DNA of 64,000 nt from Utricularia gibba (GCA_002189035.1 NEEC01000018.1:2108001-2172000); one strand, 5' to 3'; shown: positions 39,790 to 64,000, counted from the stretch's first letter. Notes: a model not told the origin generated them from the sequence alone. Translations and numbers: made by a program.

Positions 39790-41367
39790 CTATGGCTGAA
39801 CCAGTTTGACTCCCCTGCTCACGTCCTCGCACTGCCTAAGATAAGGCTCGACGAGGCTAGTAGCAGTCGCGTGTCTTGCTTCACAATCGTAGCTTGGAGG
39901 CATATGAAAGCAGGGGTCCATCGATAGAAGTCGATGGCATGATGGAGCATTTTCCGTCTCGTTCTTTGGCTTGAATACCATCCATGGCGTGAGCCCACCT
40001 AGACCCTGAGCCACATACCCAAAAGTTGATGATGCACTTGTGACCAGTTTATCTGTTAAGCTGAGCAGGTACATCTCTGCCAACGCTTTCCTATCATGAT
40101 TTAGATCTCCGGTATGCTGATGCCCCTCAAAGCTCGGTTGATGGATCGAGATGTCTTCTCCGGTTAGTGTTCCATTTTCCCAATACAGTTTTCTCATTTG
40201 GGTAAAGTAGTATCGGCTCAACGACGCTAGCATCACCGCAATCTTATGTTCTCCCATTGCTTTTGAGAGACTTTTTTCCTCTTTGTTACTAGCATTTGGA
40301 AGCAAACCCTCTGTCACAGTGCAGGAGAGAACTTGATCCAGAACCTTATCAGAAGGGATGCCTTCTTCTCGATGAAAAATGCGAATCTGGATCCCAACTT
40401 TCACATCAGCAGTAGACAAATAAGCTTCATAGAATCTCGTCACAAGTTCCCAGACAGAATCCGTTGGATGGAACAAATACCTACTCAAGAAGTGGAAAAC
40501 TGTCCCCTTGTCCGGGAATAGCTTATGCAGCTCTTCTCTAAACGATGGCATCATGAAGAAGGCCGGAGCGAAGTACTCGTTCGACATCATGATCGTCCAC
40601 GGCACGTCTTTCACATACGATTGCTCTTTGTCGCAATAGAAACGTTTATCTAAATCGCCGTAATCGGAATAAACATGAGCATACACGTAAGGTGGCAGTG
40701 TAGAGCCACCAGCGTCGCCCAACACATTCTTCCTCAGTAGCTCCCCAAAACTGTCCTGTGAATGTTTCCTAAACCCTTTGAATCTATCGCGCAAGGGGAA
40801 GTCCGATGGAAGTAGCCACGAGCCACCGGGAAATGGCTCGCAGAAGAGATCCGAAATGGCGTCTTCCGGGTCGACGAGGAGGACCCGGTCCGTGAGAAGA
40901 GCATACAAATATGCAGACGCAAGACTGATCATTCTGTTGCCTAAGCCGCCGGTTGGAAACCATATATTGTACTTGCACTCAGTTGGCGTGATGGATTTGT
41001 TGCTATGTATAATTGCCACTGTTTTGTTATAGAAATCTGTATACGGGGAGCATTTCCGATGTCGTTCTTCGTAGCTTCGAAGCTTGGATACGAGGTAATG
41101 AGAAGGTTTTCTTGACGGCCGTCTTCCATGTAAGAGATTGTCATACTCATACCTACTCCGACAAGAAACCTCGTCGAATCGACTCGGAAGCAGCTCGTCA
41201 TCATGCATCGTGTAAAGATAAGTACTTTGCTCGCGCTTGTTGTACAACAGATGATGCTCCGTTAGCGAGCTGGTGCTGAACAAAAATGACAACGCGAACC
41301 CCGCAAGCAATATAACACCCACCGATTTGAAAACCTTGGCCGCCCAGCTCTTGAATCTCGTTTCCAT
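39790..41367 (-). CDS. Alpha-1,2-fucosyltransferase (GT37, xyloglucan FUT1-like), single exon, 525 aa
   Basis: Type II TM, GGLGNRMISLASAYLYALLTDRVLLVD, DLFCEPFPGGSWLLP, VGIQIRIF, HQPSFEGHQ, ALAEMYLLSLTDKLVTSASSTFGYVAQGLGG, MDPCFHMPP. Confidence 0.95.
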   Translation of the reverse strand: METRFKSWAAKVFKSVGVILLAGFALSFLFSTSSLTEHHLLYNKREQSTYLYTMHDDELLPSRFDEVSCRSRYEYDNLLHGRRPSRKPSHYLVSKLRSYEERHRKCSPYTDFYNKTVAIIHSNKSITPTECKYNIWFPTGGLGNRMISLASAYLYALLTDRVLLVDPEDAISDLFCEPFPGGSWLLPSDFPLRDRFKGFRKHSQDSFGELLRKNVLGDAGGSTLPPYVYAHVYSDYGDLDKRFYCDKEQSYVKDVPWTIMMSNEYFAPAFFMMPSFREELHKLFPDKGTVFHFLSRYLFHPTDSVWELVTRFYEAYLSTADVKVGIQIRIFHREEGIPSDKVLDQVLSCTVTEGLLPNASNKEEKSLSKAMGEHKIAVMLASLSRYYFTQMRKLYWENGTLTGEDISIHQPSFEGHQHTGDLNHDRKALAEMYLLSLTDKLVTSASSTFGYVAQGLGGLTPWMVFKPKNETENAPSCHRLLSMDPCFHMPPSYDCEARHATATSLVEPYLRQCEDVSRGVKLVQP

Positions 41368-42643
41368 GATGCAATGCTGCGGACAAGATTGCAACTATTA
41401 CTACACGAGTCTTATACTACCACAGGGAGATGATAAACCGATGAAGGCTGTTTATTAAAATGCAACTATGGTTACATCTTTGAGGTGATGATGTTACGTT
41501 CATACGTGCCCCCTGGGTGTGCCCGTGGACACACGAAATGTATTCATGGCACTTTTTTCAAGTGCGGCAAACATTTAAGATCTTGTTGTGACCAACAATT
41601 GTTCTCAATCTTTCCATATGGCAATTTGAAGCCAATAATGCAACACTTTTTCAGACAGCCGTGGAATCTACACACCGTAGGTTAGGGTTTACTTGTAATA
41701 GATGCGTGCGGGAGTTAAGACAAGGGATTGAATTCTTGTTCAGATGCAACCCCAATGCTATCTGTTCGGGCTAATAACGAGACCATTAGGCCACCCAACG
41801 CCTCTGTAGCTATGATGAACTTGCACGAAAATGTTTACGACAGAAAATATAAATGGAAATATAAAATTACAGTGTGTTTGTTGACCTGAGAAGGGGCTGA
41901 ATTGAATATGTTGCGTAGACCTAAGAAATACCCGAAATTTATTTTAGGATATGATTGGTATAATTTCTGGAGAAGCACTTAAAATTAGAAGTGGGAGTTT
42001 TAAACTTCTTAAAATTGAAAAATACTTCTCTAAAATCAAAAGCTTTTTCAAATAGAATCTTAGTTTTTTGCACTTCATTTCGGCTACTACATGATTTGGA
42101 AGTGGAAGGAGCAATCGCTTTGATGCTTCGGGACATCAAAGATACTCCGAAATGGCGGGCGGCACACGAGATAATTACCATTCAGTATTCTTTGATTAAA
42201 CCCCAAAGTCAAAATCCTCACACTTAGGTGCTCATTAATTCGCCTAGGGTTCTACATCGTCTGTAGCGTGAACGAGGAAGCGGCCAAAGAGTAGTTGCTA
42301 CGCCTACGTCCATTTTCAAATTTAAAATCTATTCCATCCAAATGCATGATTAAATCAAATAGTAATTATTCCCTAATTAAAACCAAAAAAATCAAATTCT
42401 CATATAAGAAAGGCAGGTTCTGATCAAGTCAATCAGGTAGAAAATGTTTCATGAATGGGGTTTATTGGGGATAATAAGCCCTCAAAACGTATGTGATTAG
42501 CACTTAGAATAAAATGGAAATGATACAGAAAATAACCTACAAAGAATATTTTCCAAGCCAGAAGTGAACCTTGTAAAGTGGAACGTTAAAAGGGAAATGC
42601 ATTATCGGATGGAGAGTTTTATCAACAAGAAAAAAGAGGGAAG

Positions 42644-44224
42644 TCATGGGAAGGCACAATACTTGGAATCACTAATGCAGAGGAACAGTCTCTCGTGTGC
42701 CAGTGCCATTTTCTGAGCCGTGAACATAAAGCTCGCATACTTGTTGCAGGCTGCTCCTCTCACGGCTAACCTCGCCGCGCCTTCCGCCGCCACGAGCTCG
42801 AGTGTCTCGTACAGGGACTGCACATTCGGCGTAAACATGTACCCGAATTCATCGTCGACGACGATGGTCCCTCTGATGCTAGGAAACCTTGATGCCATTA
42901 TAGGCTTCCCTGTCATCATCGCTTCGTTCAGGGTGTGATCGAGGCCTTGTGGTCTCAGCGTCGGGTTCACAAAAATGTCGATACCGTTGTAAAACGCCCG
43001 TAATTGCATCGGGTTCATTGATCCCAGAACCAAAACCTGAGGACCGAGCTCTTTGTATCTACTTCCCCAGGGACCAGAACCTACGACGATTAGGTACGCG
43101 TGGGGGTGCTTGGTCATGAACTTGGAAAACGCCTCGAACAGCAAGGGGTGCCCTTTGTCTTTCACCAGTCTCCCGGCTACTCCGAATACGAGGCTTGCGT
43201 TTTTCGGTAGGCCGATTTCGGATCGAAATTTCTGCCCCATTAAAGGGTCCGGAGCGAAATCTTTATGCACACCGTTGGCGATTACGTGAACTCTTCGAGA
43301 TGGGATTTGGTAGACGTCTCTCAGCATTTCTCCGCAGCTATCTGAAGTAGCGATATGGTGAGCGTAACTTGAGAAGAATCGAATCTCTTTCAGAACCTTC
43401 GGGAGTGATTCCTCAAGGCTTTTGGAGAAGTCGGGTGAACGAGGCTCGTCGGGCTTTCGAGCAAGATCCAAGTAGATACTCGATTGGACGCTCTCGAGTG
43501 CGATTCCATGCCATGAAACTGCCACGTTTGGAGCTCCAACGGCTAGCCAGTGGGGAAGAGAGACGCTTTCTGTGTGGATCACATCAAACTTGCCGAGTTT
43601 TTCTTGTTCTTTAAAAATTTCCCAAGCCTTCTCAGATTGCCACTTATCAGGCTCACCCTCGTGCCAATGAATTACCAGATTCGGGGACTGAACCACCGTC
43701 TTGTTGACCGGCGGTGAAGTGAAGATATGGATGCGATGCCCTGGTAAGAAAAAAAATAATAACTTCAGTATTATTTTTTTCATAAACTACGAAAGAAAAA
43801 AGTTCAGCAATTGCAAGAACAAAATTGGATCATGACCTCGCGCAGCGAGGACTGAGTGAAGGGTCTTGGCATGGCGCTCCATGCCACCGGGCGTTGACGT
43901 GGTGGGCCATTTCCTTGTGAAAACGGCGATCCGTAAAGTCACCGGCGAAGGCCTCTCTGGATATTCCAGCTTGTTTAAAGAAAACTCGGCACGGCGGAGA
44001 TCTCCTGACCAGGGCTTGGTGCCTGAGGTGAAACTAGCGCATATACATCCCGGGGAGGGTGTGTGTAGAAGAAGCATAGCGGGGATGATGAACACGAGGA
44101 GGATGATGCAGAAGGCCAGCACGATATTAGGGATCCGACTAAAAGACGACGGCTTCTTGAACTTTCCGATGGCGGAGCTCATCTTAACCGGTGCCATGGC
44201 GCTAGATGACAAATTCAGGAGCAT
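42644..44224 (-). CDS. Membrane-anchored GT4 (GT-B, retaining) glycosyltransferase; exons 44224-43837 and 43740-42644
   Basis: TM segment, LRIAVFTRKWP..PGGMERHAKTLH, GHRIHIFTSPP, VAGRLVKDKGHPLL, FVNPTLRPQGLDHTLNEAM; start could be ATG 44224, 44197 or 44182. Confidence 0.93.
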
Positions 44225-45920
44225 CAGCTTCTTATAGCCCTCATACCAAAAATCTCCCAAACAAATTATTTAAGCAAAAGACCAAAAAAAGAACTGGAAA
44301 TCGCGTTTCTCGTGGTTCCAAAAACAATGAGAGACCATGTTTTTCTTAAGCAATATAATTTGGGTTTCTGTACCCAATATTTAAAATTCCACAACGAAAT
44401 TAATTTGCTCATTCTTTAGGTGCAGCTGGTTAATAAAATCTCACGAAAGTCAACCCAATTCAATTGATGTGTTCTATTTGCTTCCTTTCTCCAAGGGCAA
44501 ATGAAACCAACAAATGTTGACTCCAACAAAGCTAACATTTCATGTCATAAACAGACAAACAGCTTGAGAAAGAAATCAGGGTTTTGTTATAAACACAAGG
44601 ATTACATGTTACTGCTCTTGTTCTAATCGTAGCTGTTCTTGTAAAAATGTCGGGTAAAGAAAATATCTTTGATGGGTATCGTATCATTAATGAAAGAAGA
44701 ATCGTGAATTCAAAGCACTCCGTTGGACGAATTTGAGATTAGGCTGTAATTACCTAAGTCTCCAACAAAGTTAATGGCCATGGATTCTGACGTTATTAGG
44801 TTTGCTTTGATAAGATGCTTTAATTTATTGAGCATTAAATATGATGGGAATTAATTTACATAACAATGAATAATTACGCAAAGAAAATTTTATAATCAAG
44901 TTTATATATAATATTATTTAAAAAATTAGGATAATATTGTATTTTACCATAATTGGATTAACTAAACTCATCTAATTGATGGGGCTTATGTTTCAATATG
45001 AAATTATTTAATCTATAGTACTAAATATCATTATTTATTAACATATGATTAATACGAATTATTTAATATAAATTAATCTTATATATTCTATCAAACATGT
45101 CCTTAGTATGAAAGAGGCTATTTGGATGAGGGTAAGAGATGGGGACATCAACTTATGAGTCCTTTCATTATTTCATTAGCAGTTAATTATCGTTGTTAAT
45201 TCACTAATCACCCCTCAAGGCGGAAAGCCACACTATCACTCACCAAGTTTATCAATGAATTGATTATGCTTCAAAGAGTATTAATTCCTTAGTTCAACAA
45301 GCTTACCTTTAGCGCTTTTATTCCTAGGGCGTTAGTATATGTTATTAATTCTTTTATAAACAAAACAAGTGAAGAAGGTAATTAATTATCCCCACGGATT
45401 CTAAGCTTGCGTATGATACAAATGGTAGAAAAGTAAAACCCTAGGCAGCCTTGTCTTGACTGCCGAACCCTAAGCCTCTTTTTTTTTTTTTAAAAAAAAA
45501 ATCCATTTTCCATTAATTATAAATTTAGATTGAATTTTTTACTTTCAAATTATATTTTAAAATATTTGAAAAATTATTTTTAATAAATTGTATCCATTTT
45601 CTGAATTAGTAATGAGTGTAGGGTGGAAGTTGCTTGAACCCTAAAAATTATTGTGAGCATTGCGTGAGCTAAAAATGAAAGAATTAATTAACCTTTAGGT
45701 GAAACGAAGAAGTAGAAATCGAAAGCAATCAAATATTATATTGAAATACAAAGATCACAACTTGAAACCAAAGCAATAGGCTTCATAACACACATTCTGG
45801 CACTTATTGGACTAATGGTGTGTTTGATTCTGTCCAACAGACACAGTTGAGATGTGAACTTCTTCGTTTTCCTGTTGGATAGAATTCTGATACCCTATAA
45901 AAGGTGCTGGATTTCTCAAG

Positions 45921-47838
45921 TTATGCGGTTTGGGAGGTTTCATTGGTCATGTTCTTTGCCTCCAAGCCATGACTCCTCCAGTACCTTTTTTCCCAACCTT
46001 GGACTTGCTTCTCCTTCTGTTCTTGGCGTTCAAGAAACGAGCGGAGAGACGCGGAGCCATAGGGTGGCGGCATGATGCATGGGCTGGAAGGAGATGGACT
46101 TTTGACCATGGAATCAAGTAAGAACTTCTTCATCAGTCCTTCTGCAGGGCATGCGATAGTCTCTTGGCAGATCTCCTCAGCTCCCGGAGGAACTTCAGGC
46201 TTGTGCTTCAGAAGCTTAGCATACTCCTTCAACGCATGTAACATGTAGTCGTAAACATGGGTCATGCTGAATTCGTTGAACACGTAGCTGCTGCCGGCTT
46301 TGCCTAAAGTAAGAGCCTGAAGAGAGACGAATTTCAATTGGGCACGATAAGGAGATTCCACATTGTAAAGATGACTGCTTATTCTATGAGAAGTGGCACC
46401 CTACCTCCCTGTGATGCTTGTTTCCCCACTCAACAGCATGTTTGAGGGATTTGCATTTGTCATCCGGGTTAATTGGCCAGTAATGCGTCAGAGCCTTCAA
46501 GCCTCTAATGAAGAAGTCGAAGTACCGAGGCTTGATGTATAAAGTTGGAGAATCACACGCAAGAATGTACTTGTCGCTGACAGACCATGAGGAGCCTTCA
46601 ATGAAGATCCTGTACCTGCAAACGAAATACAAGAACATGAGCATCAGAACAAGGTGATCGCTAATTCAATACACTTCACCTGTGATTGCATTGGGCATCC
46701 AAGTCGGAGTTCATAAAGCCATTTGCACGCTCTTCTTCCCAGACCTGCATTTTCTTCAACATGTCACTATTTTCCCGCAGAGGGAGCAAGTTGCTGATGT
46801 GTTTCTTAAGATGATAGCTCCACTTAACAAACACTTGATCAAATAATTTAATGTTATGCAGTTGGGGATAATGCGAGTACCTGAGCATAGAGACGAGCAC
46901 CCAGTCGTTCTCTGGAGTAACGTTACATTTCATTAAATCACGTCTTGACAAAGGACCTCCGGTTTTAGTGTTACCCCGCCAATATGCGTATGGCTCTCTG
47001 TCCTGCCACGCCCTTCGTTTATTTGCCTTGTCTAAATCACTGAGTACCATCTCCCATGGCTTGATATTCACCTCAGGCCTATTCAAATGTGTCTTTGAAT
47101 TAAGGCAGATATCACAATTAATGAAATTTGAAGCAAATGGGTGTTGACTCACCAACCCCAAAAAGACCAATCGGGAAACACGATATTCACGGTGTCGTTG
47201 TCACCGCAATATCGGAATACTGGAAGTGGCAGTGAACCTCCTTTTCTAACGTTGGGATAATCCTCAGCGTTGAAAACCAGGTCCACGTCGGGGACTTCTC
47301 CAGGGTACCACTTCAGCAGCTGAAGAATTCCCCAGATAGTGAACGGGATTCTTGTTTGGAATGCGCCTTTGTAGTGTTGAACGTATGGCTTCCCGCCAAC
47401 GATCACGAGACGGAAACAGGCTTTACCAGCTGCTGCCTCCACCAATTCTCTAGAAATCCCAGTCTCCTTCCAGGGGCGCAAGTCTTCGTATATCCACTTG
47501 AAATACTCGGGGCAAGTCGAAGAAGCTGAACTTTTTTTATTTGATGGTTCTGGTGTGTTGTCGCTTTTAGGGCAGATTTGAGATGAATTGGTGCACTCCA
47601 ATGAGAAATATTCACTGCTGCCAGACTTCCCCTCCTTTTCTTCAGTGATGGAAACGACCTGTAAAAAAGTGTAATCTTGAGTAAAAAGGAGGTTTGGGAT
47701 CAGCTATTGGAATTTTTTGAACAAAAAACCCACAGAAGCATCTAATCTGACGTAGCTCATGGCAAACCAAGCGCCGGTGATAAACATGCCACAGAGGACA
47801 GCCAACAAGTAAAGCGGCTGCAACCGCAAAAACGCCAT
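45921..47838 (-). CDS. CAP10/KDEL-type GT90 protein (O-glucosyl/xylosyltransferase family), 6 exons, with one apparent 1-nt deletion
   Basis: CPEYFKWIYEDLRPW, FRLVIVGGK, TIWGILQLLKWYPGEVPDVDL, IVFPDWSFWGWPEVNIKPW, AYWRGN, YRIFIEGSSWSVSDKYILACDS, VYDYMLHALKEYAKLL; frame break at CCC 46900-46902. Confidence 0.9.
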
Positions 47839-48984
47839 GCCGGGGATTTTTGATGTGTAAGAATCAAATTCCAATTTCTATGAACATTTGGTCGTCAAAG
47901 CTAGACGCCGATGAGAGAGTATAGAAAAAATGTTGTTGATTATCAGAAAAAAAGGATATATAAGACCTCTTTCATGTGACTACCCTTTGGATGGTCCTAC
48001 AAACCCTAACTTATTCCTTTTTACAGAACATACGCCAAATTGCTAATATAAAAAAATTTACATGTGTTTCAAGGTTTTTGCCCCTATTTCTATGTTATTT
48101 TTCTATTTAATGGTTTTACAATAGGTAAGGATTGAAAGACATTACAATTTTTTTTTCTGATTTTTAGATGAACTCGTAGGGTGGACATCGGCGCACCACC
48201 TGCGCCACGAAATTTCACTTTACGATGTCATCGTTGACTATCATAAAAGTCAGACGGGTTATTTCAACATTCAAATGTGCAGTGAACATTCAGACTAGGA
48301 GTCTAACTGAGGTTGTGATTGATCTCAGACCCAGTTGAATACGTAATTACTCTACGCCGTCTGTTGAGAATCATGTAGTTTCAAGGTTGTCGTCTTATCT
48401 GAAGAACTTCTCATATTGAATCAAGTCGACAGTTTGCAGTTCCCGAAATCACGAGTTTTGATCCCATTTTCACCACTAACTCCCTGTGGCGGCCCCGTTT
48501 ACTAAGCCCTTGTCAGGGAATTCGTGGACTCATCCGAGAGGAAACATCGTCTGCCTTACGAGGGTTTACATCGTCTGCCTTAATGCTCCTGGTATGGATC
48601 TACATTATGTATTTGGATAGATGTCTAGTGTAGCATCTACAATTGGTTTGACAATGGTATCAGTGCTAGCAATTACATTACAATATGGGTAGTTACCTAA
48701 ATTTGTACCTAAGGTTTATTTGAGTCAATATTATTTATTAGCATAATTGCTGTCTAGTTTTGTGATCTGGTGGTCCTGATGGATGCAGGGCATTTAATTT
48801 GTAATACACTTGTCAAATAACGAAAGAAAGAAGGAAAAAAGACCCCAAATGACGAGGCACATCCTTGGAACTCTCTAAAAGATTTAAAAGCGAAGCTGTT
48901 TTGTTTAAATGTCTGAATATTTTTGCACTTGCCCAAAAAGGCATTGCAGTTTGCAGAACAAAATTATGGTGGTGCTGTTTTTCC

Positions 48985-50648
48985 ATGGTCTTCTCGATGC
49001 ATTTCTTGTTTTCGGGTGATTTTTGGTTCATTTGCGTAATTCTGATTAGTTCAACCCTAACAACACTCTTGATCCCACTTTCTCTCCCTTGCAATGAGTC
49101 TTCTACTTTTCTACTCCCGGATCAGATGGAGGCAGCAACTATCCCACCAGAAGATTCCTCGGAAAAAATTACTCCGACCAATTTCAGCCACCTTGCCTTT
49201 GGCATTGTGGGCTCCGAGCGTGCGTGGCACCACCGCAGAGCGTACTTGGAATCATGGTGGCAGCCAAATATCACACATGGACTTTTGTACCTCGACGCTG
49301 CTCCCACGGCGGAACTCCTCCCATGGCCCGCCTCTTGGCCACCGTATAAAGTGTCGCCTCCTGGCGTCCGTACCAAGAACCGCCTGTTCCAGGGGATATT
49401 GGAGGTTTTCCGGGAGGTTGACAATGAGAACCTGCGGTGGCTCATCATGGGGGACGACGACTCTATTTTTTTCTTGGACAATATCATCGACCTTCTTCGG
49501 CAATACGATCACAAGAAGTACTACTACATCGGTGGCCTGACGGAGTGGTTCTTGGCGGACTACTGGTTCTCGTTCGACATGGCGTTCGGTGGTGGCGGAA
49601 TCATTCTCAGTTATCCGTTGGCGAAGGCCCTCGCCGGAAATATAGAGAACTGCTCAAGAAACTATGGGGATATGAAAACCTATGACCTGATGGTAATGGC
49701 CTGCATTTTTGACATAGGGGTTTCCTTTTCTCCAAACAAGGGAATGCACCAGGTAATAATACCTTATTGGATTGCAAGATTAGTGAAGTATATTATAACA
49801 CTCGATTGGACATTTTTTGCAGATGGATCTACGAGGTGACATATCAGGGTTCTTCTCATCACACCCGGCGGTCCCATTGATATCCCTCCATCGCATGCAC
49901 GATGCGGATCCCTACTTTCCGGGGAAAAATCATACCGAATCCTTGCGCCACCTCATGAAAGCGGCGGCGATGGATCAATCGCGAATGCTGCAAATGACAG
50001 TCTGCTATTACCATCCTAGCAACTGGTCATTTTCCATTTCCTGGGGCTACTCAGCTTATATATATGAGAGTATTTTCCCGAGAAGTTACCTTCAGAAGCC
50101 TATTGAAACCTTTAGACATTGGACTTCACCGAATCGAGGTTACATCTTCATCTGCAAGGTAATCCTTACGTGCTCTGGCATTGACAGGATCATCTTTTCA
50201 GGTCCAAATTATATATTCGACACGAGGCCGCCGACCAGAGATCCGTGTGAAGCACCACATGCATTCTTTTTCGAAAGAGTTGAAGGTACATCAAACCAGA
50301 CTCTCACCACTTACAGGAGATGGAAAGCTCGTTCTTTGAAGGCTTGCGTGCGTGATGGCAATCATACAGCGGAATTCATTTCGGAGATTCATGTGGTCTC
50401 ACCATCTGGTACTCGGAAGGAGGTGAACCCTATTCTCATTCTTTCTCTTGCACTGTCTTTGAATTCAAAGCAGGGTTTGTTAATCTGAGCATTAAGTGGT
50501 TCATGTGTTCTCAATTGAGTTCCTTATTTTCATTTACTTCGTGTGTATTTAGATGGATCGTTCCGAGTGCTGCGAAGTCGTGGGTGTTGATGGTGAAAAG
50601 GCTGAGATCCATTACAGGGAATGTAATATTGGTGAGACAAGTGCCTAA
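48985..50648 (+). CDS. DUF604 (Fringe/GT31-related) glycosyltransferase-like protein, 3-4 exons
   Basis: HLAFGIVGS..AWHHRRAYLESWW, RWLIMGDDDSIFF, MAFGGGGIILSYPLAKAL, HQ/MDLRGDISGFFSSHP..PLISLH, IETF, DPCEAPHAFFF, final exon SECCEV; start ATG 48985 or 48997. Confidence 0.92.
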
Positions 50649-52508: not shown

Positions 52509-52521
52509 TATAAGGGTTCAA

Positions 52522-52581
52522 GCTTGTTTAAACTCGTTGATGTCAATGGGCGCTTGTTTAAACTCGTTGATGTCAATGGGC
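52522..52581. repeat. Perfect 30-bp tandem duplication
   Basis: GCTTGTTTAAACTCGTTGATGTCAATGGGC x2. Confidence 0.95.
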
Positions 52582-52833
52582 TATGGCATGCAAACCCTCT
52601 TCTTCAGGTTCATGTCTAAGGTTATAAATTAGTAAAACTTAGGTAATTATACAATAAATTTGAAAGTATTATCATTGTAAAAAAGTATAACATATACTTT
52701 AAATAAAATTAAAAAATTACCAAACAGCCCCTGGTTCATGTTTTATTTCAAGATGAGATGAATCCTGAGGTGATGTTTCTCTTTGATACAACCATGAGAG
52801 TGGGGAATAAAGCAACAGGATTTTGTCTGCATA

Positions 52834-54292
52834 TCAGAAACAACGTAGGGTCCAGTTTTGGTTTTCGGGGCAGAGTTTGCCGAGCGGGGACTCATCGGAG
52901 TGCTCATCGACCAGCCATAAGCCACGCTCCTTGAACCGATGGATTTTGCTGTCTCTCCCAGCGATGTAATTGTTGTGGATGATGGCATGTTGACCCTTGG
53001 TTTGCTCAGCCCACGCTTTGTTACCGAAGTACTTAAGACCAGAGGGGAACGCCGTTGCCGGAAGAAGATAATCGTCGACCTGTCAATTGCAATATGTTTC
53101 CGCCGACATCTCATAGCCGGGAATGGCGGAGCAAAAGAAGGGATGGTACCTTCCCACGAGTCTCCCTGATTGCCCAATTGAAAGGGGTTGATCATTCACT
53201 CCTGGACTCCACTGCAGCGAACTCATGCGATCGGCCCAAGTGATCATCAGTAATTTTGCCCCCGGCGTGGGTCTTAGATAAATCAGGCAGCTACAATTCT
53301 TGAGACCAAACAATCTCAGCAGCAGTAGAAGCAATGCATCGTCATTAAACATATAATTCTGATAGTGTTATTTGCAGAACTTACGTCTCCACCATCAAAC
53401 GCATAGTACGCATCGTGCGATCCTTGGAAGTAAGGAAAGGGGTCCTTCATCCAGACCGTATCAACGTCATTGTACAGAACGTTGTACCCCAGCTCTAAGA
53501 TCTGCACAGTCCGCACCCCTCTGCGTCAGAATATTGTAACCGAAGTAGAAAGAACAGAAGAAACCAGTTCTTCTCCTTTCTGCATCCAGACAAAAGGAGC
53601 GTACCTCAAGAAGATGGCGTGGCCTTCTGGATGTCAAATTGAAAAATCCCTTGAAAAAGAAGAAAACCCTAATTGGTACCATGCAACAACACGAAACCAA
53701 GTACAGCTTTTTGTTTGTTTTAGTTGAGATCCAACTCTTAGCAAGAGCAGGGTGAGTGTCATCTCTTTATGTTTGGCTTTGTTATTGTATCATGTAAAAA
53801 GCTCATGAACCCAAATAACGTCACACGAAACGGTTACCATAGAGCCAAAAGTGTTAGATGCAGGGTCCAGCGGGGGGACGCCATGATGGCGTGGCCAGGC
53901 CACCTCTTGTTGACTGTGTACAGCGTCGGATAATCCTCAGCGAACACCAGAACTTTATCCACATGCTTCAGTCTGGCAAGGCTGATCAACCAGTTGCTTA
54001 GCATCTGCAGATACGCCTCGCCCACCGTACACACTATCACCGTGTTGTTCTTCGCGACATACGCCGCCGCGTCCCGGAGCGTGTACTCCCCCGACGGTGA
54101 ACCTGGACTGTAAAACTTCGATAGCAAAAATATCGTGTTCCGATTAAGAGAGGCGACACCGATCATCGCCAGCAAGGATACGAACACGAGCACGAGGGTG
54201 AGCGGGATCCGGACCAGGAAGGACCGGGGTGAATTTCTTGGTGCTTCCCCCGTTCTCCCATCATGGACACTGCAATCGCCTCCCTCTGTCAT
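52834..54292 (-). CDS. GT77 MGP4/RGXT-like UDP-Xyl:fucose alpha-1,3-xylosyltransferase paralog, 5 exons, two apparent 1-nt deletions (pseudogene or assembly error)
   Basis: VAKNNTVIVC, NWLISLAR, AEDYPTLYTVNKRWPGHA, GFFNLTSRRPRHLLE/ILELGYNVLYNDVDTVW, CSCLIYLRPT, NDQP, AFPSG, IIHNNYI, WLVDEHSDESPLGKL. Exons 54292-53838 (455 nt) and 53298-53150 (149 nt) are each 1 nt short of phase. Confidence 0.88.
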
Positions 54293-54791
54293 TACAAACG
54301 ATCTCAAAAGCTCGCACCTTTTTTCCCTTATCAAGCTATCAGGTTTTAAGCTTCTAGATATGGACTCTGTTAGTACCACCTCTTCGAACTTTCGTTGACT
54401 GGAAAATTAATTTCCATTGAAAATAAAAAAAAACTGAAATATTATAATAATTTCGAGTAACTTCTTGCAATTATATATAAATTCAGTCTCACACACACAT
54501 TTGATCATGAATTTCAAGCATCCACCATAAAAAAAGATGTGTTTTTGTATTTTATTCATGTATTTGATTAGCAGTCAAGTTAGGGTTTTGAAGAATCAGC
54601 CCACTAGTTTTTAGGGTTCGCGATGATTAATGGGTAATTACGTCGCTGACTTGGGAGTAGATACGCAACATTCGGGTAAACAGCTGGAGGGCTCCGGCTG
54701 ATGAACTCTGCTGCGCCTCCAGCTCTCATAATAATAGTATAAATTATTTTGACGTGAATGTGATTTTTATTTTCCGGAATATAAGAGTATG

Positions 54792-55288
54792 ATATTCAAG
54801 CACCTCTGCTTTCTGGCCCCCTTGAGAGTTATCTACTGTAATGGCCCTGTTGATAATCGTTGTGTCATTCTCCATGGATCTAGATGAGTACATCTTGAAA
54901 CAACAAGAAGAGGAGGAGAGGAAGCGCCAGATGCTAGAGAGAAGAAGGCCGGGCTCTCTTGCATTCAATTAAATGTTGTTCCTCTTTTCATGGATTTTTT
55001 TTTTTTCAAATTCTCTGCCGCAGATGAAGAACCTTAACCAGACCTATTGTAGCCAAGATGGGATCAGAGGTTTCGGTTCATGCAAAAAATTGTGTTGATA
55101 AATTTCTTGTATTTGAGATTTCGCAACCAGAGGCTTGGTCTCCCCAAATGCTAGATGATTCCTAGCACTTGCGCTACAATTATTGCTGTAAAATGCTATC
55201 TGATCATTAATTTTTTCTTTAATGCGAGTAACTGCAGGTTTGACACAACATGAGATCCTACCCTTGTACGCCATTCCAGTAACCTAGT
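54792..55288 (+). repeat. Diverged direct copy of 39257-39746 (last exon and 3' flank of the unknown gene)
   Basis: Colinear matches such as CATCTTGAAACAACAAGAAGAG, TTGTAGCCAAGATGGGAT, GTAACTGCAGGTTTGACACAACATGAGATCCTACC. Confidence 0.92.
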
Positions 55289-55311
55289 GACAAAACATGA
55301 GATCCTAACCT

Positions 55312-56115
55312 TGCTCACGTCCTCGGACTGCTTAAGATAAGGCTCGACGACACTAGTAGCAGCCGCCTGTCTTGCTTCACAATCATGTTAAAATTTAGGA
55401 TAAGATGAGTTGGACGAATATATATGAAACCCAAGTACATAAAAAACGTAGATCATATTAAAAAAAATTAAACCTAACTAATTACCAGTGATATGCAATC
55501 TCGTATATATTTAACTATTTCATTTTAATTTTTCGATAAGGTATTATTGTTCTGAAATTGTAATTGCTGTTTTTTTTACCTATAACCTAAGTATTACTTA
55601 CAATCACAAAATAAAAGTCTTAATCAGATTGAATACTAGCTCGATTTGAGGTTAAATATTAGAACAAATAATCACATATTAAGATTTAAAAGTTAAATAG
55701 TTAAGTATATAAAAAAATATAAATCATTAGTAATTAATTGGCCGTTATCTTTTCTAATATGATTTATGTTTTTTTATATACTTGGGCTTTACATGTACTT
55801 GCTTGACCCATTGAATTCTTAATTTTAACATTGTATCAAAGTGTATTTACCTTACGGCATAAGTTAGGTGGCCAAGATCAGTTTCGTGCTGATCTAAGTT
55901 TCAATTAAAAAAAACAAAGAGATGCATGGCTTAGGCGACAAAAATTAAATCAATTTATGACCTGATCACTATGTACAATTACAAAAAAAAGTATTAACCA
56001 GATCAAAGACTAGTTTAACTTGACAGCAAATATTAAAACAAATAATCCCACATATCCAAAAGTTGATGATGCACTTGTAACCAATTTATCTGTTAAGCTG
56101 AATAAATACATCTCT
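55312..56115 (-). pseudogene. Two remnants of a duplicated fucosyltransferase CDS (55312-55384 and 56048-56115)
   Basis: They match 39816-39888 and ~40011-40078 of the FUT gene; the intervening and remaining CDS is missing. Confidence 0.85.
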
Positions 56116-56332
56116 ACTAACTCTTGTATTAATCTTAGTTTAGACTTGATATTCAATCATGACAAAATATAATGTGTTAACCTTCACAAAGCAAACATCT
56201 CAATATAATGTTCGACCGTAATTCCACTATGTTCATACTTGATTAATGTTTGATTAAGACTTAGTTTATAAATTTATTTCATATAATAATTAACAATTGT
56301 ACAACAACATGCTAAATTTTCTGTTTATCATA

Positions 56333-57108
56333 TACCCAATATTTAAAATTCAACAACGAAATTAACTTGGCCATTCTTTAGGTGCAGCTGGTTAATAAAA
56401 TCTCAAGAAAGTCAACCCAATTCAATTGATGTGTTCTATTGGCTTTCTTTATCCAAGGGCAAGTGAAACCAACAAATGTTGACTCCCCAGATACGCCTTT
56501 TTATTTTGAATTCACTTAACACATTACATGTCATAAACAGACAAACGTCTAGAGAAAGAAATCAGGGTTTTGTTATAAATACGATGAGTACATGTTACTG
56601 TTCTTCTTCAAGTCGTATCTATTCTCGTAAAAATGTCGGGCAAAGAGAATATCTTTGATGGGTAACGTATCATTAATGACAGAAGAAATGTGAATTCATA
56701 GCAGCTCCGTTGGACGAATTTGAGATTAGGCTGCAATTAGCTAAGTCTCCAAAAAAGTTTGTGCATGGATTCTGATGTTATTAGGTTTGGTTTGACAAGA
56801 TGCTTTAATTAATTCAGTACTAAATATGATAGGAATTAATTTACATAGAAATGAATGATTACCCATAGAAAATTTTATAATAAAGTTTATGCATAATATT
56901 ATTAAAACACCTATAATAAATAGTTGGAAAAACAATTTTTAAAATAAAAAGGATGATATTGTATTTTATCATAATTGGATCAGCTAAACTCATCTAATTC
57001 ATGGGTTTATGTTTCAATATGAAAATATTTAATCTATAGTACTAAATATCATTATTTATTTAACATATGATTAATATGAATTACTTAATTTAAATTACTT
57101 ATATATGT
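56333..57108 (+). repeat. Diverged direct copy of 44371-45085 (GT4 upstream region)
   Basis: Colinear, for example TTTAGGTGCAGCTGGTTAATAAAATCTC, CCCAATTCAATTGATGTGTTCTATT, CCGTTGGACGAATTTGAGATTAGGCTG. Confidence 0.92.
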
Positions 57109-59699
57109 TGGAAGATGATGAAGCGATTTTTGAACAATCTGACCAAATCGTGTGAATTTGATGAAATAGATCTGGAAGGATTGTCATGCAAAATGGATAT
57201 AAGTGTGGCTAGTATTTGTAACTAGAATTTCCTAAATCTGTTCATGTTCAAGTGATGTTTTGTCCGTTATTTTTTTCCTTTAGAGCGTCCACGTAAAATT
57301 TGGTGTTTTTTTTTTTTTGCATCAAATTACACAAACACAAAGTTATTATTGAATCAAACACAATTATGCCAAGCTATTCATTGATATTCCTTTTTGTGCC
57401 TTTTAGCTACATGCTAAAATATAACAGAATGGGTAGACACAAAAAGGAACAATACTGTTTGGGTATGTAAATTGCTCTAATTTTGATCTCAAAACTTACC
57501 ACATCCAAGGCAACCTCTTCCAGTTGTAATTCTTCTCATGTACTCGTTTTGGTGTATAGGAGATAGAAATTCTTAAACCTCTGTTTGATTTTTTCTTCTA
57601 CTATGCATCCTCAAAGTTGTTCATATTTATTTCTTTCACCAATGAATCTTCAATCTTCATAGAATTCTGCAAAAGCACAAAATGGAATTGACTCAAATTG
57701 ATCATCCCCCTTCTTCCCGCATTGGCAATCAACAACTACCAAGAGATGCACAAACAAGAACCCTAAAATTTCTAGCAGCAGTGCGACAGCTTCTCCAACT
57801 TGATTTAGAAGTCTTTGTGATCATAAATGATAGTGGCATCTGCTTTGTTGCCGTTCTGCATGAGGTTTAGGAAAGGAGCGAGATGGGGTATTAGAACACA
57901 CAATTCTACATTAGGATTTGAAATTAATATGATCAAGTATATAAAAAATTATAAATTTCAAATAATCAATTAAACCTAATACTTTTTAATATGATTTACA
58001 TTTATTGTATACTTAAAATTTCTGTATATTTGCTCAACCCGTTGGCTCCTGAATTTCAACAACGGGGCAGATCCCAGTCATTGTCTTTGTCCTTCTATTT
58101 ATAGCTTTGGAAACACACCTCTTTATAATGGGTTAAGTTTGAGCGTGGTTGATGATTGACAGCGTTTATGCAACTCATTTAACGCAGGAAACGATCTATT
58201 CGGGATGTTGTAGTATTCTTCCATATTGTTATCATATACAAGTATGTGTGAAAACGAATGCACTTGTGAAGATTTGTATAACGGCCATCAGTTTAAGTGT
58301 TTTAAGTTTCACTATTCATGCGTATCTGCCTTGCAGTAATTTTTCTTATTACCTGAATAAATGATTGGTTGAAATTAAAGGAGACATCCACTGAGAACGT
58401 TGTGACATGAAGCATTACCTTAATAATTAGTTCGTCTTATATTTTCCAGTTTCCTTGCGTTAACTAGAGTTACCTATGATTTTGTTAGTGACCACTTGGC
58501 TTCAAGGAGTCGAAACACTAACTAACATTAAAACACCTAAACTTAATAATCAGTAATCAGTGGCGGCCGATGTCCATTAGTGTGGGCTACATTCTTATTT
58601 AATTCCATGTACTGTGTGCTTGACCTACTCTCTCACCATGAAATATTAAGTTGCTCATTGAAGGAAGATTTCTAGCTCACGATCTTGGAGCTTAGGTAGC
58701 AGGTTTTTTCTTGAGAAAAATTCCTTTTTTTTCCACACTTTTATGAGTTCACAGTCTACATCTTTATAGTTGCTTTTCTTAATGGTAATAAGTATAGCTG
58801 CTGACTTTTTGAAATCTAAACCAATTGGGATGTTGGACTGGTTCGTTGGGCCTTCGCCCTCTCGTTTTTGATCTCTCAAATCCAGCCCCATTTGACTTGG
58901 CCCAACTCTTGGTCCAGCTCTCTATCCAATATGTATTCCATCTTCTTTCTGACCTAGCACTTCGAGGCAGCGCTCTTCTTTCTCCCATGGTTTCAGCAGG
59001 TGGACCTGAAATATCTCTTCATGCTCTAACACTCATAAACTTATACACAGAAAAGTAAACTGGTGTGTAAATGATCAATTATATCCCATTTTACACAAAA
59101 TATAATCTAGTTTAAAATATTTAAATCACCAAATTCGATATTCAACTCATCATTTTGACCAAAAATTATACTAAAATTAACATGAAGAAGGTTTACTAAA
59201 ATATGTGCCGTCAAGATGCATGACCAATAACTTTGAAACTTCAGGCCGCTTGATCAGAGGATAGAGATATAACGTGGTTCCAAACCCATTTTCTAGATGT
59301 TGGATCGCGCAGAGTAAATGGTTATCAGTGTTGTCACTGATGTTGTGGTGTGTGTATGACACTACGGTTGTATTTGATGATCAAACACAGAGTGAAAGAA
59401 GCAGAGTACTTTCCAAATGAATAAAACAGAGCACTCTTACATCAGCAGAAGAAACAAAAACTGCACTCATAATCGACGGAGCAGACTAGACTTGATACTA
59501 GTAAACTTTAACTAACTCAACCGAAAAACAATGGGGGAAAAACAGGTACTTATTTGCTAGTGGTCTTGATCATGGACCAAGCTCAGCCTCGAAAACGATC
59601 ACTACTTCCAGCCGTGTCAATAAACACTGGGTGATCTTCATCAGGTCGCTGAATGTCCTTCCGGCCCATTACATGAATAATGAGACTTGGCTTCAGTGC

Positions 59700-59855
59700 T
59701 TCACTAGATTTTATTCAGTTTTCGTGGAGCTACTATTTTTATAGCTCCATAGATTGGAGAAACCAGCCAAACGGTGGAATGGTCTACGTGCAATCGAGCA
59801 ATAGGACAGGTGGGAATTTTACAAATTTGGGTATGAACCCCGGAAATACATTCCT
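59700..59855 (+). pseudogene. Frameshifted GT77 (nucleotide-diphospho-sugar transferase) fragment
   Basis: DWRNQPNGGMVYVQSSNRT then, in a shifted frame, EFYKFGYEPRKY; compare NHNCGFMYIRSNPRTIRFLKFWYDSR in the gene at 62.2 kb. Confidence 0.7.
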
Positions 59856-60205
59856 AAACACGAGGAGGATGATGCAGAAAGCCAGCACAATATTAAGGAT
59901 CCGACTAAAAGACGACGGCTTCTTGAACTTGCCGATGGCGGAGCTCATCTTAACCGATGCCATGGTGCTGGATGACAAATTTAGGACCATCAGCTTCTTA
60001 TAGCCCTCATACAAAACACTTCCCAATCAAATTATTTAAGCAAAAGACCAAAAAAAGAACTGGAAATCTTGGCATTTCGTGTGGTTCCAAAAACAGTGGG
60101 AGAACATGTTTTTCTTAAGCAATATAATTTGGGTTTCTGTACCCAATATTCAAAATTCCTCAAGAAAATTAATTTTGCCATTCATTAGGTGCAGCTGGTT
60201 AATAA
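59856..60205 (-). pseudogene. 5' fragment (start, TM region and proximal promoter) of a GT4 duplicate
   Basis: Matches ~44090-44435; encodes MASVKMSSAIGKFKKPSSFSRILNIVLAFCIILLVF and then breaks off. Confidence 0.9.
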
Positions 60206-60217
60206 CTCAAAGACGTA

Positions 60218-60674
60218 TGTTGAGAATCAAGTAGTTTCAGGGTTGTCTTGTCTGAAGAACTTCTCATATCGAATCGAGTCGACAGTTACCAGTTCCTGAA
60301 ATCACGAGTCTTGATCCTACTTTCACCACAAACTCCCAGTGGCGGCCCCGTTCACTAAGCCCTAGACAGGGAATTCGTGGACTCATCCTCTAACATCGTC
60401 TGCCTTAATGCTCCGGGTATGGATCTACATTATGTATTTGGATAGATGTCTAGTGTAGCATCTACATTTGTTTTGACAATGGTATCAGTGCTAGCAATTA
60501 CACTACAATGTGGGTAGTTACCTAAATTTGTACCTAAGGATGTGCCTCGTCATTTGGGATCTTTTTTCCTTCTTTCTTTCGTTATTTGACAAGTATATTA
60601 CAAATTAAATGCCCTTCATCCATCGGGACCACCACATCACAAAACTAGACAGCAATTATGCTGTCTAGTTTTGT
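60218..60674. repeat. Copy of the GT90/DUF604 intergenic region: direct 48363-48714, then inverted 48741-48866, then a foldback palindrome
   Basis: Direct match up to TACCTAAGG; reverse-complement match GGATGTGCCTCGTCATTTGG...CAAAACTAGACAGCAATTATGC; 16-bp perfect inverted repeat 60639-60674. Confidence 0.92.
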
Positions 60675-61215
60675 AATAGTAAATTCTTGATTAATTAAAT
60701 ACTATGTTAATAATTTCATCTTGAATTATGCTAACTAGAAAACAGTAAATTCTTGATTTTCAATTCCTGATATTTCCAGGGGATTAATTTCCTAATCTAG
60801 CCTATGGTTGGCAAAGCCATGCTTAGGTAGGAGTACATGAGGGTTGTTGGCTAATGAGTCATGAGGAGTGAAGTTATTCATGATTTCCTGTAGGCTGTGT
60901 TAAATGGGCGCATAATCTATGGTTACCAAGCCTATGTTCATCAAGATGCTTTTCTCCGCAATGCATTTTCTAGACGTTTATTATACACTTGTGTTTTTGT
61001 TTTTGTTTTTGTTTTTTTGAAGGAGCGAGAGATTAAATGCTTAGCATTTGGGAGAGAATGGGTGACACCTCATTTATTGTTAGCCGTGTTCAATTAACCT
61101 GGAAGTCGTCCCTCAGTTTCATCCATGGAGTTACGGTATCCACATTTGATGTTGATCCATGGAGTTACTGCTGTATCCCGCTGTTCAAATTATGAATGGT
61201 TTCAATTTGCATATC

Positions 61216-61224
61216 TATATAAAT
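61216..61224 (+). promoter_or_regulatory. TATA box of the GT77 gene
   Basis: TATATAAAT 55 nt upstream of ATG 61271. Confidence 0.55.
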
Positions 61225-61270
61225 GGTTCGGGCATTGAACAGCTAACCCACGCATAGCGCCGAGAATGAA

Positions 61271-62596
61271 ATGAGTTCGCCGGTGGCGGGAGGTGGCACC
61301 TCCTCCTTGGATTCCCACGGGAATCCAAGTAATTTGAAGAAACGCCGCCTTTTTATTGTCGCCGGAAGGGATGTCCAGTTGACCGTGTTACTTTTTGTAG
61401 TATTAACTCTCATTGTCATCACTACCATGCAACTTGGGTATGGTGATCCAAACCTGCTGTTTTGGAGACCTTCTACAGCGCCATCCGGATCTTGTGATCT
61501 CTCCTGGGAGCCTCCGGTAAAATGATCATCTTTCTCCAGTAGCATACGCTAGAAAAATCTGTAACTGGTTAACGACGGAGTGATGTGTAGCCTTACTGAA
61601 CTGAAAATTTGGTGCGAGACAGTTCACAGCAGATAAGCAGAAGCTGAAGAACATGTTAGAAGATGCGGTGATGGAGGACAAGAAGACAGTGATTCTAACA
61701 ACTATAAACGCAGCCTGGACGGAACCAAATTCGACCTTCGACTTGTTCATGGAGAGCTTTCGAGTTGGAAATCAGACTCAACACCTACTCAATCATATGA
61801 TACTTTTCTCGTACGACCAAGTTGCATATTATCGCTGCTTGGCATTAAACCTCCATTGCTTCCCACTGCACACCGACAATGACTTTGGTGGCGAGAAGGT
61901 TTTCATGAACGCAGAATACTTAAACATGAACTGGGGAAGGCTTGACCTTCTGAGAATCGTGCTTGAATTGGGATACGATTTCCTTTTCACGGTAAATGGT
62001 TTCACCTTCTATGCAGTTATTATTGACATGAGTTGGGATGATAAAAACACATGTATTGCTTAATTTTTCAGAGTGTTACCTTTAATTGCGAGGGGCATTT
62101 TTTTTAGAAGTTTCATGAAAATTTTCAGGACGTAGATATATTGTGGCTGCGTAATCCACTGCATCATTTCTTCCCGGAAGGGGATTTTCAGATGGCATGC
62201 GACTTCTACAGGTTTGGACCCACGGATAGGAGAAACAACCACAACTGCGGATTCATGTACATCAGGTCCAACCCCAGGACAATACGATTCCTCAAATTCT
62301 GGTACGACTCTCGAGATTATGATCTTTCAGATCACGAACAGAATGTGCTCTACGTACTCAAGTTCAATCCGGTAGTAGATGAGATGAACATGACGATGCG
62401 CTTCTTCGATACTAACTACATCAGCACTTTCTGCCAGCCAAGTAGGGATCTGGATCATGTGGTGACCATGCACGCAAACTGTCGCGTTGGCCTCCGCGCG
62501 AAACTCCGTGCTCTTACAGTCGTGCTCAACGACTGGAAGAGGTATATCACGTCGTCAGAGAGGAACAAATCTTGGTCAGTCACCAGGTTTCCTTAG
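61271..62596 (+). CDS. GT77 nucleotide-diphospho-sugar transferase family protein, 3 exons
   Basis: TM segment, MEDKKTVILTTINAAW, FDLFMESFRVG, LELGYDFLFT/DVDILWLRNP (DxD), DFQMACD, GFMYIRSN, HEQNVL, FCQPSRDL..V.TMHANC; the acceptor of intron 1 is ambiguous in phase. Confidence 0.92.
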
Positions 62597-63532
62597 TGAT
62601 CTGTATCGTTTATATTTGTTATTTGAACACAGTGTTTGCTGTGGTGCCTCATTGTTTTGGGATGAAGAGGTTAACCATTCAATCGTCCACAATCTCAGAG
62701 AGCAATAAATAAGAAACAGTATCATTATATGCTAAATAAATAAGCAAAAGTTTTATATGTGATGTTCTTCTTCTTCATCATTCGTGAAACTCTGCATGCG
62801 CGCTTGGAAGTTGGAACGTTGTAAGGACCAATCTCAAACCATAACCCTAAATCCCATAAAATAAAATGATATTAATGGAAATCATATTGATTATAAATAC
62901 GAATAGTTCGAAATTCTTATAGTCAAACCATTTGTTTCGTGAAATTTGTTGATGTTTCGTTCTTTGGCGATCAAATTCCAACAAGTTTCGTCCACTTGAG
63001 TTGAACCTGAATACAAATGCATTGTTTGTTATTGGACAAACTATCAAAATGATACCTTTAGTAGTAATTATATGTGCTTATTATAAAATGTTCTTTTGTT
63101 TTCTTATCGCTTTTTTACTGTTTTTCATCTCCAGATGATTTTCTTTGTCCATTTGTGGTTTCTCGGGACTATCTTGCCGCCATTTGTCCTGGTTGGCAGA
63201 AGTCACATTAAAACCTAAAACTGGAAAATGGATTACGAATTTATATTTGTGTATTGACTTGGTCTGTTATTTTCTCCTTTTTCTTTTCCGTGACACGATC
63301 TGAATCAGGGCACAGGATCAAAATGATGCTCGAAAATATTCCGGCGGCTTGAGTGGTAACGAAAATACCCGTATAACACGGCACAAAATAACAAGTAGCA
63401 CCCCAGGTTCACTTCAAACCAACGAGTCGTACAACGACTTTTTATTATCTTCAGCACAGATCGACAGAAACTCTTACAAAAGGTCCATACTTAGCATTGA
63501 AACAGGGACGCAAATGTTCGCCTCTCAGAACA

Positions 63533-64000
63533 TTAGGATAAGATCCAATGTTCGCCGTGGACGCCCACTCGCAATCCATGAATCTTAGCAAATAGGTTAA
63601 CCGCTCTGTTCACACCATCCATAACAACATCGTGGCCAAAGAGGACACCACCAGGGCGCAATACCTGTTGTACAGACATTACATATGGTAACAATAACGT
63701 CATCCAACACCAGTCAGGCACTATAGAAACTTGTATATATACATATTAAACACATCCTATCATTTTATCCAGGGACTACTCTCCAGAAAAGATTCTAACA
63801 GCCGGGGTATCACCCTAACTGAGTCAATCTTTGGAACACTGGTTTGGATTTTGTTTTCTAATTTCGCATTTTCAGGAGATTTTTCTGAACATTAAATAGA
63901 AAAATATAATTCTTGCAAATGGTAGGTTGATTAGTAGGAGCAAAAAGTTTCATGGATTATATTTACCTTGTAGCCGTTGTTGATGTCATCCCAGGCGGAG
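63533..64000 (-). CDS. 3' end of a class I SAM-dependent methyltransferase (Methyltransf_24-like); runs off the window
   Basis: SAWDDINNGYK (64000-63967), GT-AG intron, then VLRPGGVLFGHD...GVNRAVNLFAKIHGL...GEHWILS* (63664-63533). Confidence 0.82.

Follow-up and report, generated by a model that had tools for sequence, protein, structure and literature searches.

How did six glycosyltransferase (GT) genes of different kinds come to stand side by side in a plant genome, and is there a reason for their being together? The question is raised by a stretch of plant nuclear DNA from Utricularia gibba (GCA_002189035.1, NEEC01000018.1:2108001-2172000), 64,000 nucleotides (nt) long, which we shall call the window. 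Between 39.8 and 62.6 kb, Pfam searches and exon reading reveal six intact genes for type-II membrane GTs, each of another GT family or subfamily, in the order GT37, GT4, GT90, DUF604/Fringe-like, GT77 no. 1 (MGP4/RGXT-like) and GT77 no. 2. The genes span 22.8 kb and are separated by spacers of 1.1-2.2 kb and by one 7-kb gap, in which decayed copies are found. The grouping is real: six non-homologous genes for GTs of the Golgi type-II kind, possibly accompanied by a methyltransferase gene, form a secondarily assembled cluster, which, with at least three adjacent non-homologous biosynthetic genes, corresponds in this respect to what is understood as a gene cluster in plants. We may go further, tentatively and with more doubt than confidence, and see in it the first plant cluster for a Golgi-made glycan: six GTs, and perhaps a sugar O-methyltransferase, gathered from unlinked loci into a 23-kb block and building a side chain that carries fucose, xylose and methyl groups.

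An earlier note on this DNA had described seven consecutive genes, with no recognisable unrelated gene between them, and had proposed that Pfam be used to verify their families. The six GT identities were assigned by Pfam as expected, while the seventh member, a methyltransferase, found no match in Pfam or in the Protein Data Bank (PDB). The intergenic open reading frames (ORFs) of the cluster are without any Pfam match, and scans of 38-64 kb with Rfam and for tRNA genes came back empty, in line with what had been claimed. The N-terminal hydrophobic segments noted for the six complete genes are all present: the mean Kyte-Doolittle (KD) value of a 19-residue window ranges from 1.97 to 3.26 in the six proteins, which fits a type-II Golgi topology. 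It had also been argued that tandem duplication would be inadequate to explain such a grouping, and this holds, because the families are non-homologous; the two GT77 proteins do not match each other at E<0.01 and thus represent different subfamilies.

Chance offers little help in accounting for such a neighbourhood. A run of six different GT subfamilies would be expected 1e-7 to 2e-5 times per genome of 30,000 genes when 1.3-3% of these encode GTs, a rough figure, as it assumes independence and uses generic GT frequencies, not this genome's annotation. The expectation nevertheless stays far below one, even when the count of scanned windows is taken into account.

Six glycosyltransferases and a truncated neighbour

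The GT37 gene (39790..41367, minus strand) is a single exon of 525 codons, coding for a FUT1-like fucosyltransferase whose membrane anchor is N-terminal, its hydrophobic window spanning residues 12-30. It matches the XG_FTase profile (PF03254) with an E-value of 7e-163 over profile positions 31-474 of 475. Aligned over its full length with AtFUT1 (5KOE), the protein scores 531 bits, as compared with 452 for AtFUT4, and judging from these alignments it belongs to the FUT1 rather than to the FUT4/6 lineage. Its nearest relatives are FUT1-like proteins of Lamiales, with only 57% identity, and an 18-row tree places it within the core-Lamiales FUT1 clade, at the end of a branch of 1.6 (median 0.14, hence about 11 times the median), a length that makes its exact position unsure. 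The motifs of the catalytic core have been retained, and this combination of a long branch with a preserved core is consistent with a change of function after recruitment. The FUT1-like genes of Erythranthe and Sesamum contain at least one intron and extend over 2.5-4.6 kb for 570-576 residues. Because the gene of the window is a single exon while its counterparts carry introns, we may recognize here an intron loss, compatible either with a general compaction or with a retroposed copy.

The GT4 gene follows (42644..44197, minus strand), in two exons that flank an insertion of 96 nt. It encodes the Glyco_transf_4 and Glycos_transf_1 domains of a GT-B fold, preceded by the most hydrophobic of the six N-terminal windows (KD 3.26, residues 25-43). 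The insertion (43741-43836, minus strand) has GT..AG ends, is T-rich and contains an in-frame stop; once it is spliced out, the coding sequence (CDS) specifies 485 residues without a stop, and the alignment with its Sesamum relative (P0121) continues over the junction. Since the orthologs of Sesamum, Erythranthe and Genlisea are intronless, the insertion is a candidate for a recent intron gain. A near-repeat is found at both of its junctions (AGGTCAT and AGGGCAT). The protein is 72% identical to that of Sesamum and 64-72% identical to about 120 eudicot proteins; in the tree it groups with two copies of Genlisea inside Lamiales (SH-aLRT 86), with a branch of 0.79 for a median of 0.24, a position that points to a fast-evolving relative of Genlisea, probably within Lentibulariaceae. 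By these comparisons the gene looks like an ortholog of a conserved eudicot lineage. It is putatively equated with the Golgi type of Arabidopsis At1g19710 through its source name, 'UDP-Glycosyltransferase superfamily protein', and through the type-II topology described for that type (PMC3522684).

The next two genes are placed head to head on either side of an intergenic region of 1.15 kb (47839..48984), parts of which are duplicated upstream of GT77 no. 2. On its left, the GT90 gene (CAP10/Rumi-like; 45921..47838, minus strand) has about five exons. Four exon pieces (45921-47601, minus strand) together cover positions 2-396 of 396 of Glyco_transf_90 (PF05686), as 2-131, 120-217, 214-287 and 287-396, and an upstream first exon brings the start codon, at 47838, and the membrane anchor (hydrophobic window at residues 9-27); the splice sites between exons 1 and 2 are approximate, several GT..AG pairs being possible. 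On its right, the DUF604/Fringe-like gene, related to GT31 (48985..50648, plus strand), consists of exons 48985-49752, 49823-50138, 50202-50420 and 50551-50648, with the domains PF04646 and PF02434 (Fringe) and a DDD motif, 'MGDDDSIFF', in the spliced protein. The spliced CDS is intact and reaches residues 39-450 of 450 of a Paulownia relative (P0326). This gene belongs to one of several paralogous subclades in Lamiales, with a branch of 0.88 where the median is 0.28. Its relatives are concentrated in Lamiales, Solanales and Gentianales, a distribution that suggests a lamiid expansion of an uncharacterised family related to GT31.

Two GT77 genes complete the set. The first, of the MGP4/RGXT type, is read on the minus strand as a transcript at 52733..54314 (CDS 54292-52834), for which RNA contigs delineate five exons (54314-53837, 53648-53605, 53501-53385, 53298-53148 and 53077-52733), and Nucleotid_trans (PF03407) is recognized on an exon piece. 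Its best full-length representative is an MGP4-like protein of Cynara (P0247, in a cluster named UDP-D-xylose:L-fucose alpha-1,3-D-xylosyltransferase MGP4), to which the corrected reading frame, discussed below, is 57% identical over 280 residues, without a loop of about 20 residues found in MGP4. The second (61271..62596, plus strand) has three exons, an N-terminal anchor and a DVD motif, 'DVDILW', and covers positions 1-72 and 77-208 of the 208 of PF03407.

Beyond it lies the 3' end of a seventh gene, cut by the end of the window (63533..64000, minus strand). What can be seen is 11 codons of the penultimate exon and the whole of the final one, at about 63533-63715, in all some 70 residues, for which no meaningful match appeared in Pfam or the PDB at E-values up to 10. 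Language-model features associate the fragment with the Methyltransf_24/TylF/CmcI clusters (score 0.91-0.92), which is a lead only; its identity as a possible class I methyltransferase, dependent on S-adenosylmethionine (SAM), is thus a model-based and unconfirmed proposal.

Separate origins and a decayed copy

All the genes of the cluster are of plant descent, and we may ask where they stood before. The earlier note had considered that the same order, if it were ancestral synteny in distant eudicots, would deprive the grouping of its meaning; this is not what was found for GT37, GT4 and DUF604. Sesamum alatum carries its FUT1-like gene, with a rotamase gene next to it, at 3.64 Mb of scaffold 1, and its GT4 gene, with a Nodulin-like neighbour, at 2.44 Mb of scaffold 7. 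In Erythranthe the GT37 gene is again the neighbour of a rotamase gene (CM122614.1, locus tag 09G), and the GT4 gene belongs to a different chromosome record (CM118640.1, 05G), in the order Nodulin-like, GT4, a gene of unknown nature, Asp protease, SBP and RLK. As for DUF604, members of its subclade form tandem arrays of at least three genes in Andrographis (WJEG01000005.1) and Handroanthus; the DUF604 loci of Sesamum alatum and Genlisea, also considered as comparators, were given little weight, as they are paralogs of other subclades. Because the closest relatives of the three genes occupy separate loci with conserved non-GT neighbours, their grouping is not ancestral synteny, and the comparison indicates that GT37, GT4 and DUF604 moved here from separate ancestral loci. 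None of the ancestral neighbours (rotamase, Nodulin-like, Asp protease, Kelch, PRMT5, SPRY, OMT, SSB, SBP and RLK) was found in the window. Branch lengths suggest, further, that the lineage has evolved about three times faster than its relatives (GT4 and DUF604 are both at about three times the median), and GT37 faster still.

In the flanks of eleven loci taken from relatives, the only additional GT genes were tandem copies of DUF604 and one GT77 gene, in Genlisea. Genlisea has two copies of GT4. Copy a has kept the Nodulin-like gene as its partner, and copy b is part of a series, GT4, Asp protease, Kelch, GT77 and PRMT5, contained within 10 kb. In Genlisea aurea (KE527140.1, 677-6585), 3.7 kb separate this GT4 from the GT77 gene, with the Asp protease and Kelch genes between them, and the GT77 protein is 47-52% identical to GT77 no. 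2 of the window. On this comparison, the linkage of GT4 with GT77 no. 2 may therefore go back further than the remainder of the cluster.

The window has also recorded something of its own past. Self-comparison uncovered, between 54.7 and 60.7 kb, a decayed partial duplicate of the block formed by GT37, GT4, (GT90) and the intergenic region, which was absent from the earlier note. Its first part (54792..57106, minus strand; 79-87% nt identity) comprises the downstream flank of GT37, two pieces of its 3' end (55310-55387 and 56046-56126) and the region upstream of GT4; most of GT37 and the entire coding sequence of GT4 have been deleted. Its second part (59856..60662, minus strand; 84-96%) contains a 5' fragment of GT4 (59856-60026), 88% identical at the protein level, and its upstream flank, which directly abuts a duplicate of the intergenic region between GT90 and DUF604; GT90 itself has been deleted. 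Segment by segment, 39256-39888, with the downstream flank and 3' end of GT37, pairs with 54792-55384 (79%); a GT37 fragment, 40011-40088, with 56048-56125 (87%); the region upstream of GT4, 44371-45086, with 56333-57106 (83%); the 5' end of GT4 with its flank, 44091-44436, with 59857-60205 (91%); and the intergenic region appears twice, as 48344-48714 against 60200-60539 (84%) and, inverted, as a 127-nt piece, 48740-48866 against 60536-60662 (96%). The duplicate has lost nearly all its coding sequence, so that the extra copies were not retained.

As the decayed copy keeps the order GT37-GT4-GT90-intergenic, that order predates the duplication and is not the product of an assembly join; the adjacency would accordingly be older than a nucleotide divergence of about 10-20%. 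One could imagine that genes had been misjoined in a long-read assembly, the more so as this assembly does contain homopolymer indel errors. There is, however, no N in the window, RNA contigs match it at 99-100% identity, and the duplicate independently preserves the transition from the 3' end of GT37 to the region upstream of GT4 and that from the 5' end of GT4 to the GT90/DUF604 intergenic region, so that an artefact of this kind is very improbable.

The intergenic copy now precedes GT77 no. 2 by about 600 nt. One might think of a duplicated promoter, but in the RNA runs available hardly any signal comes from this gene. The two parts of the duplicate are separated by a 2.7-kb AT-rich stretch (57107-59856, with a GC content of about 0.30-0.39), in which no ORF recognisable by Pfam was found and near which a direct repeat of 118 nt occurs (55657-55774 and 57889-58006, 73% identity). 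The stretch may be a degraded mobile element.

Transcription and integrity of the genes

That the members of the block might be pseudogenes without expression had been named in the note as a reason to abandon its interpretation. They are not: all six GT genes have intact ORFs, of 340-525 codons, and the RNA includes spliced transcripts of two of them, the MGP4-like gene and DUF604. GT77 no. 1 is represented by spliced five-exon contigs, at a depth of 16-30, in three RNA runs (X1-X3) from two studies. Contigs of DUF604 have a depth of 2-5, and its intron 50421-50550 was seen. A fourth run, X4, yielded no contig for either gene. Over the stretch from GT37 to GT90 (39790-47700), 46% of the sampled sequence words were held by X1, 44% by X2, 29% by X3 and 13% by X4, and, as far as contig-presence data can tell, the share of these words goes up and down with the MGP4-like transcript over the same runs. 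From 54.4 to 64 kb, words were present in X1 only (7%), and GT77 no. 2 and the methyltransferase gene are barely expressed, almost silent in the runs examined. The cluster is thus mostly transcribed, with transcripts of two genes and RNA coverage over three more.

GT77 no. 1 had the appearance of a frameshifted pseudogene, an interpretation which the RNA led us to reject. In comparison with the assembly, contigs from the three runs have one extra G after 53871 and another after 53183, and the corresponding deficits of the assembly lie in runs of G (GGGG and GGGGGG at 53183 and 53871). Because the contigs carry the extra G and the sites are G runs, the two apparent frameshifts are homopolymer errors of the assembly, and the corrected ORF is intact. 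As such indels mimic frameshifts, other apparent pseudogenes in this assembly may be artefacts.

Intact genes may still be on their way out. It is conceivable that we are looking at relocated duplicates under relaxed constraint, drifting toward loss while working housekeeping copies do their task elsewhere in the genome. The very long branch of GT37 would then find a ready explanation, and so would the missing loop and the 57% identity of the MGP4-like protein, the near silence of GT77 no. 2 and the decay already undergone by the duplicate of the block. Against such drift, all six reading frames have stayed open, the core motifs of GT37 are conserved, the MGP4-like gene gives a spliced transcript in fair abundance, and the branches of GT4 and DUF604 do not go beyond what is expected of a fast lineage. 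We consider this explanation to be quite unlikely.

Shared pathway or chance neighbours

Are these genes, then, functionally linked within one shared pathway? We hold the chances of this to be about evenly balanced. Low chance expectation for a run of six GTs would favour it, as would the requirement for at least three independent relocations into the same 10 kb, and an accelerated GT37 that has kept its core motifs points in the same direction, as does, within contig-presence data, the parallel course of the GT37-GT90 words and the MGP4-like transcript over the runs. Each enzyme would be anchored in the Golgi membrane and would add one sugar in the lumen, and co-location would have resulted from selection for joint inheritance, or joint regulation, of enzymes decorating the same class of glycan. 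The GT37 enzyme, derived from FUT1, would have shifted its acceptor; the MGP4-like enzyme would put xylose onto fucose; further residues would come from the GT4, GT90 and DUF604 enzymes. The product would most plausibly be a fucose- and xylose-bearing side chain, either of a pectic polymer of the rhamnogalacturonan II (RG-II) type or of a polymer of the arabinogalactan or mucilage type.

The literature gives this some substance. Co-expression with RGXT4, GAUT and GT29 genes led Voxeur et al. to choose the GT4 of the At1g19710 type as a candidate for RG-II (PMC3522684). RGXT1-4/MGP4 are the known xylosyltransferases of RG-II, transferring xylose onto fucose, while no RG-II methyltransferase is known (PMC12168206), and members of GT37 act on xyloglucan, arabinan-type acceptors, rhamnogalacturonan I (RG-I) and RG-II (PMC10933551). 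A shared pathway thus gains support, since the GT4 type, RGXT/MGP4 and some GT37 members have all been linked to RG-II. That the product itself is of the RG-II type seems to us unlikely; a lineage-specific glycan, secreted or of the arabinogalactan type, is an equally open alternative.

The genes might also be neighbours by coincidence: unrelated housekeeping enzymes of the wall, rendered adjacent in a compact and heavily rearranged genome, where, for instance, GT37 would fucosylate xyloglucan and the MGP4-like enzyme xylosylate RG-II, with no functional link between them. We see this as possible, if on the doubtful side. The region is prone to rearrangement, as witnessed by the segmental duplicate and its deletions, and several observations agree with a coincidence as well as weighing against a common pathway. 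Expression is uneven, the MGP4-like gene being far above DUF604, and GT77 no. 2 and the methyltransferase gene nearly absent. No 8-mer was common to at least four of the six upstream regions, in a comparison of low power (null mean 0.47). For a lineage-specific cluster, GT4 is an unusual member, as it seems orthologous to a conserved housekeeping gene. The cluster was not seen in Genlisea, where both copies of GT4 have a non-GT context save for one GT77, and no second species shows the block. Further points tell against the pathway: the evidence of recruitment covers three of the seven genes, GT37, GT4 and DUF604; nothing kept the duplicate of the block from decaying; RG-II is conserved, which fits poorly with fast-evolving enzymes; and the chance figure is as rough as its assumptions. 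What coincidence has to face is that figure, minute under independence, and at least three separate relocations, all ending within 10 kb.

It is worth placing the shared-pathway proposal among systems of known organization. In plant metabolite clusters, as here, at least three non-homologous biosynthetic genes are adjacent, assembled by relocation and reshaped by local duplication and decay, to which an accelerated GT37 is added in the present case. Their enzymes, however, are cytosolic (UGTs, P450s, terpene synthases) and make small molecules, whereas all those of the window are Golgi type-II membrane GTs, with no scaffold-forming enzyme and, as putative product, the side chain of a polymer. 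The note had stated that no plant cluster of such a kind was described. Our literature searches agree, having returned no described plant cluster of Golgi polysaccharide GTs, with the qualification that plantiSMASH predicts a 'saccharide' class, which is even the commonest predicted class of plant clusters and is largely based on UGTs and other enzymes of small-molecule metabolism (PMC10698576).

With the enzymes of RG-II the cluster shares a gene of the MGP4/RGXT family, a GT4 of the At1g19710 type and a GT37, the family of the RG-II-active AtFUT8. It differs in that the GT37 of the window is FUT1-like, not FUT8-like, though no direct comparison with FUT8 was made, in that its MGP4-like protein is divergent, at 57% identity and with one loop missing, and in that the Arabidopsis genes have not been reported as clustered. 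RGXT1 and RGXT2 are homologous tandem copies. Their locus numbers, At4g01770 and At4g01750, are neighbouring (PMC12168206).

Bacterial and fungal loci for capsules, exopolysaccharides and O-antigens also place several GTs and a modifying enzyme side by side, building one glycan stepwise; those loci, however, are operons or islands with genes for transport and polymerisation, while the genes of the cluster have separate promoters and introns of their own, and the window is devoid of genes for transporters or for nucleotide-sugar enzymes. As for tandem arrays of a single GT family, the DUF604 gene does come from a subclade that forms arrays (Andrographis, Handroanthus), but the window has one DUF604 gene, flanked by GT90 and GT77, and of the six genes no more than two fall into a common CAZy family, the GT77 pair, which are too divergent to match each other.

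More than 20 GTs and all the methyltransferases are at stake in the synthesis of RG-II and other complex glycans of the wall or of secretions, and most of these GTs and every one of these methyltransferases await identification (PMC12168206); co-expression screens have so far provided candidate lists only (PMC3522684). The cluster would offer a guilt-by-association set for direct tests, comprising an MGP4/RGXT-type enzyme, a candidate GT4, a diverged FUT1-type enzyme and uncharacterised GT90, DUF604 and GT77 proteins. If the shared pathway is real, candidate enzymes have been named for unassigned steps in the synthesis of complex pectins, and the concept of the plant gene cluster, so far one of small molecules, would come to include Golgi-made polymer glycans. 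Should the neighbourhood be coincidental, it would still be a useful example of how far a compact genome reshuffles the order of its genes.

The left flank of the cluster is made of unrelated genes, coding for an EF-hand protein, an AHL protein, an RpiB-type isomerase and a Dof protein, together with an aldehyde dehydrogenase-like gene known from the reading of its translation alone. In this region, the ORF of the RpiB-type sugar isomerase (31982-32916) is overlapped by an ORF in another frame that, by eye, is cupin-like, an arrangement that could reflect either a fused gene interrupted by an intron or a further indel of the assembly.

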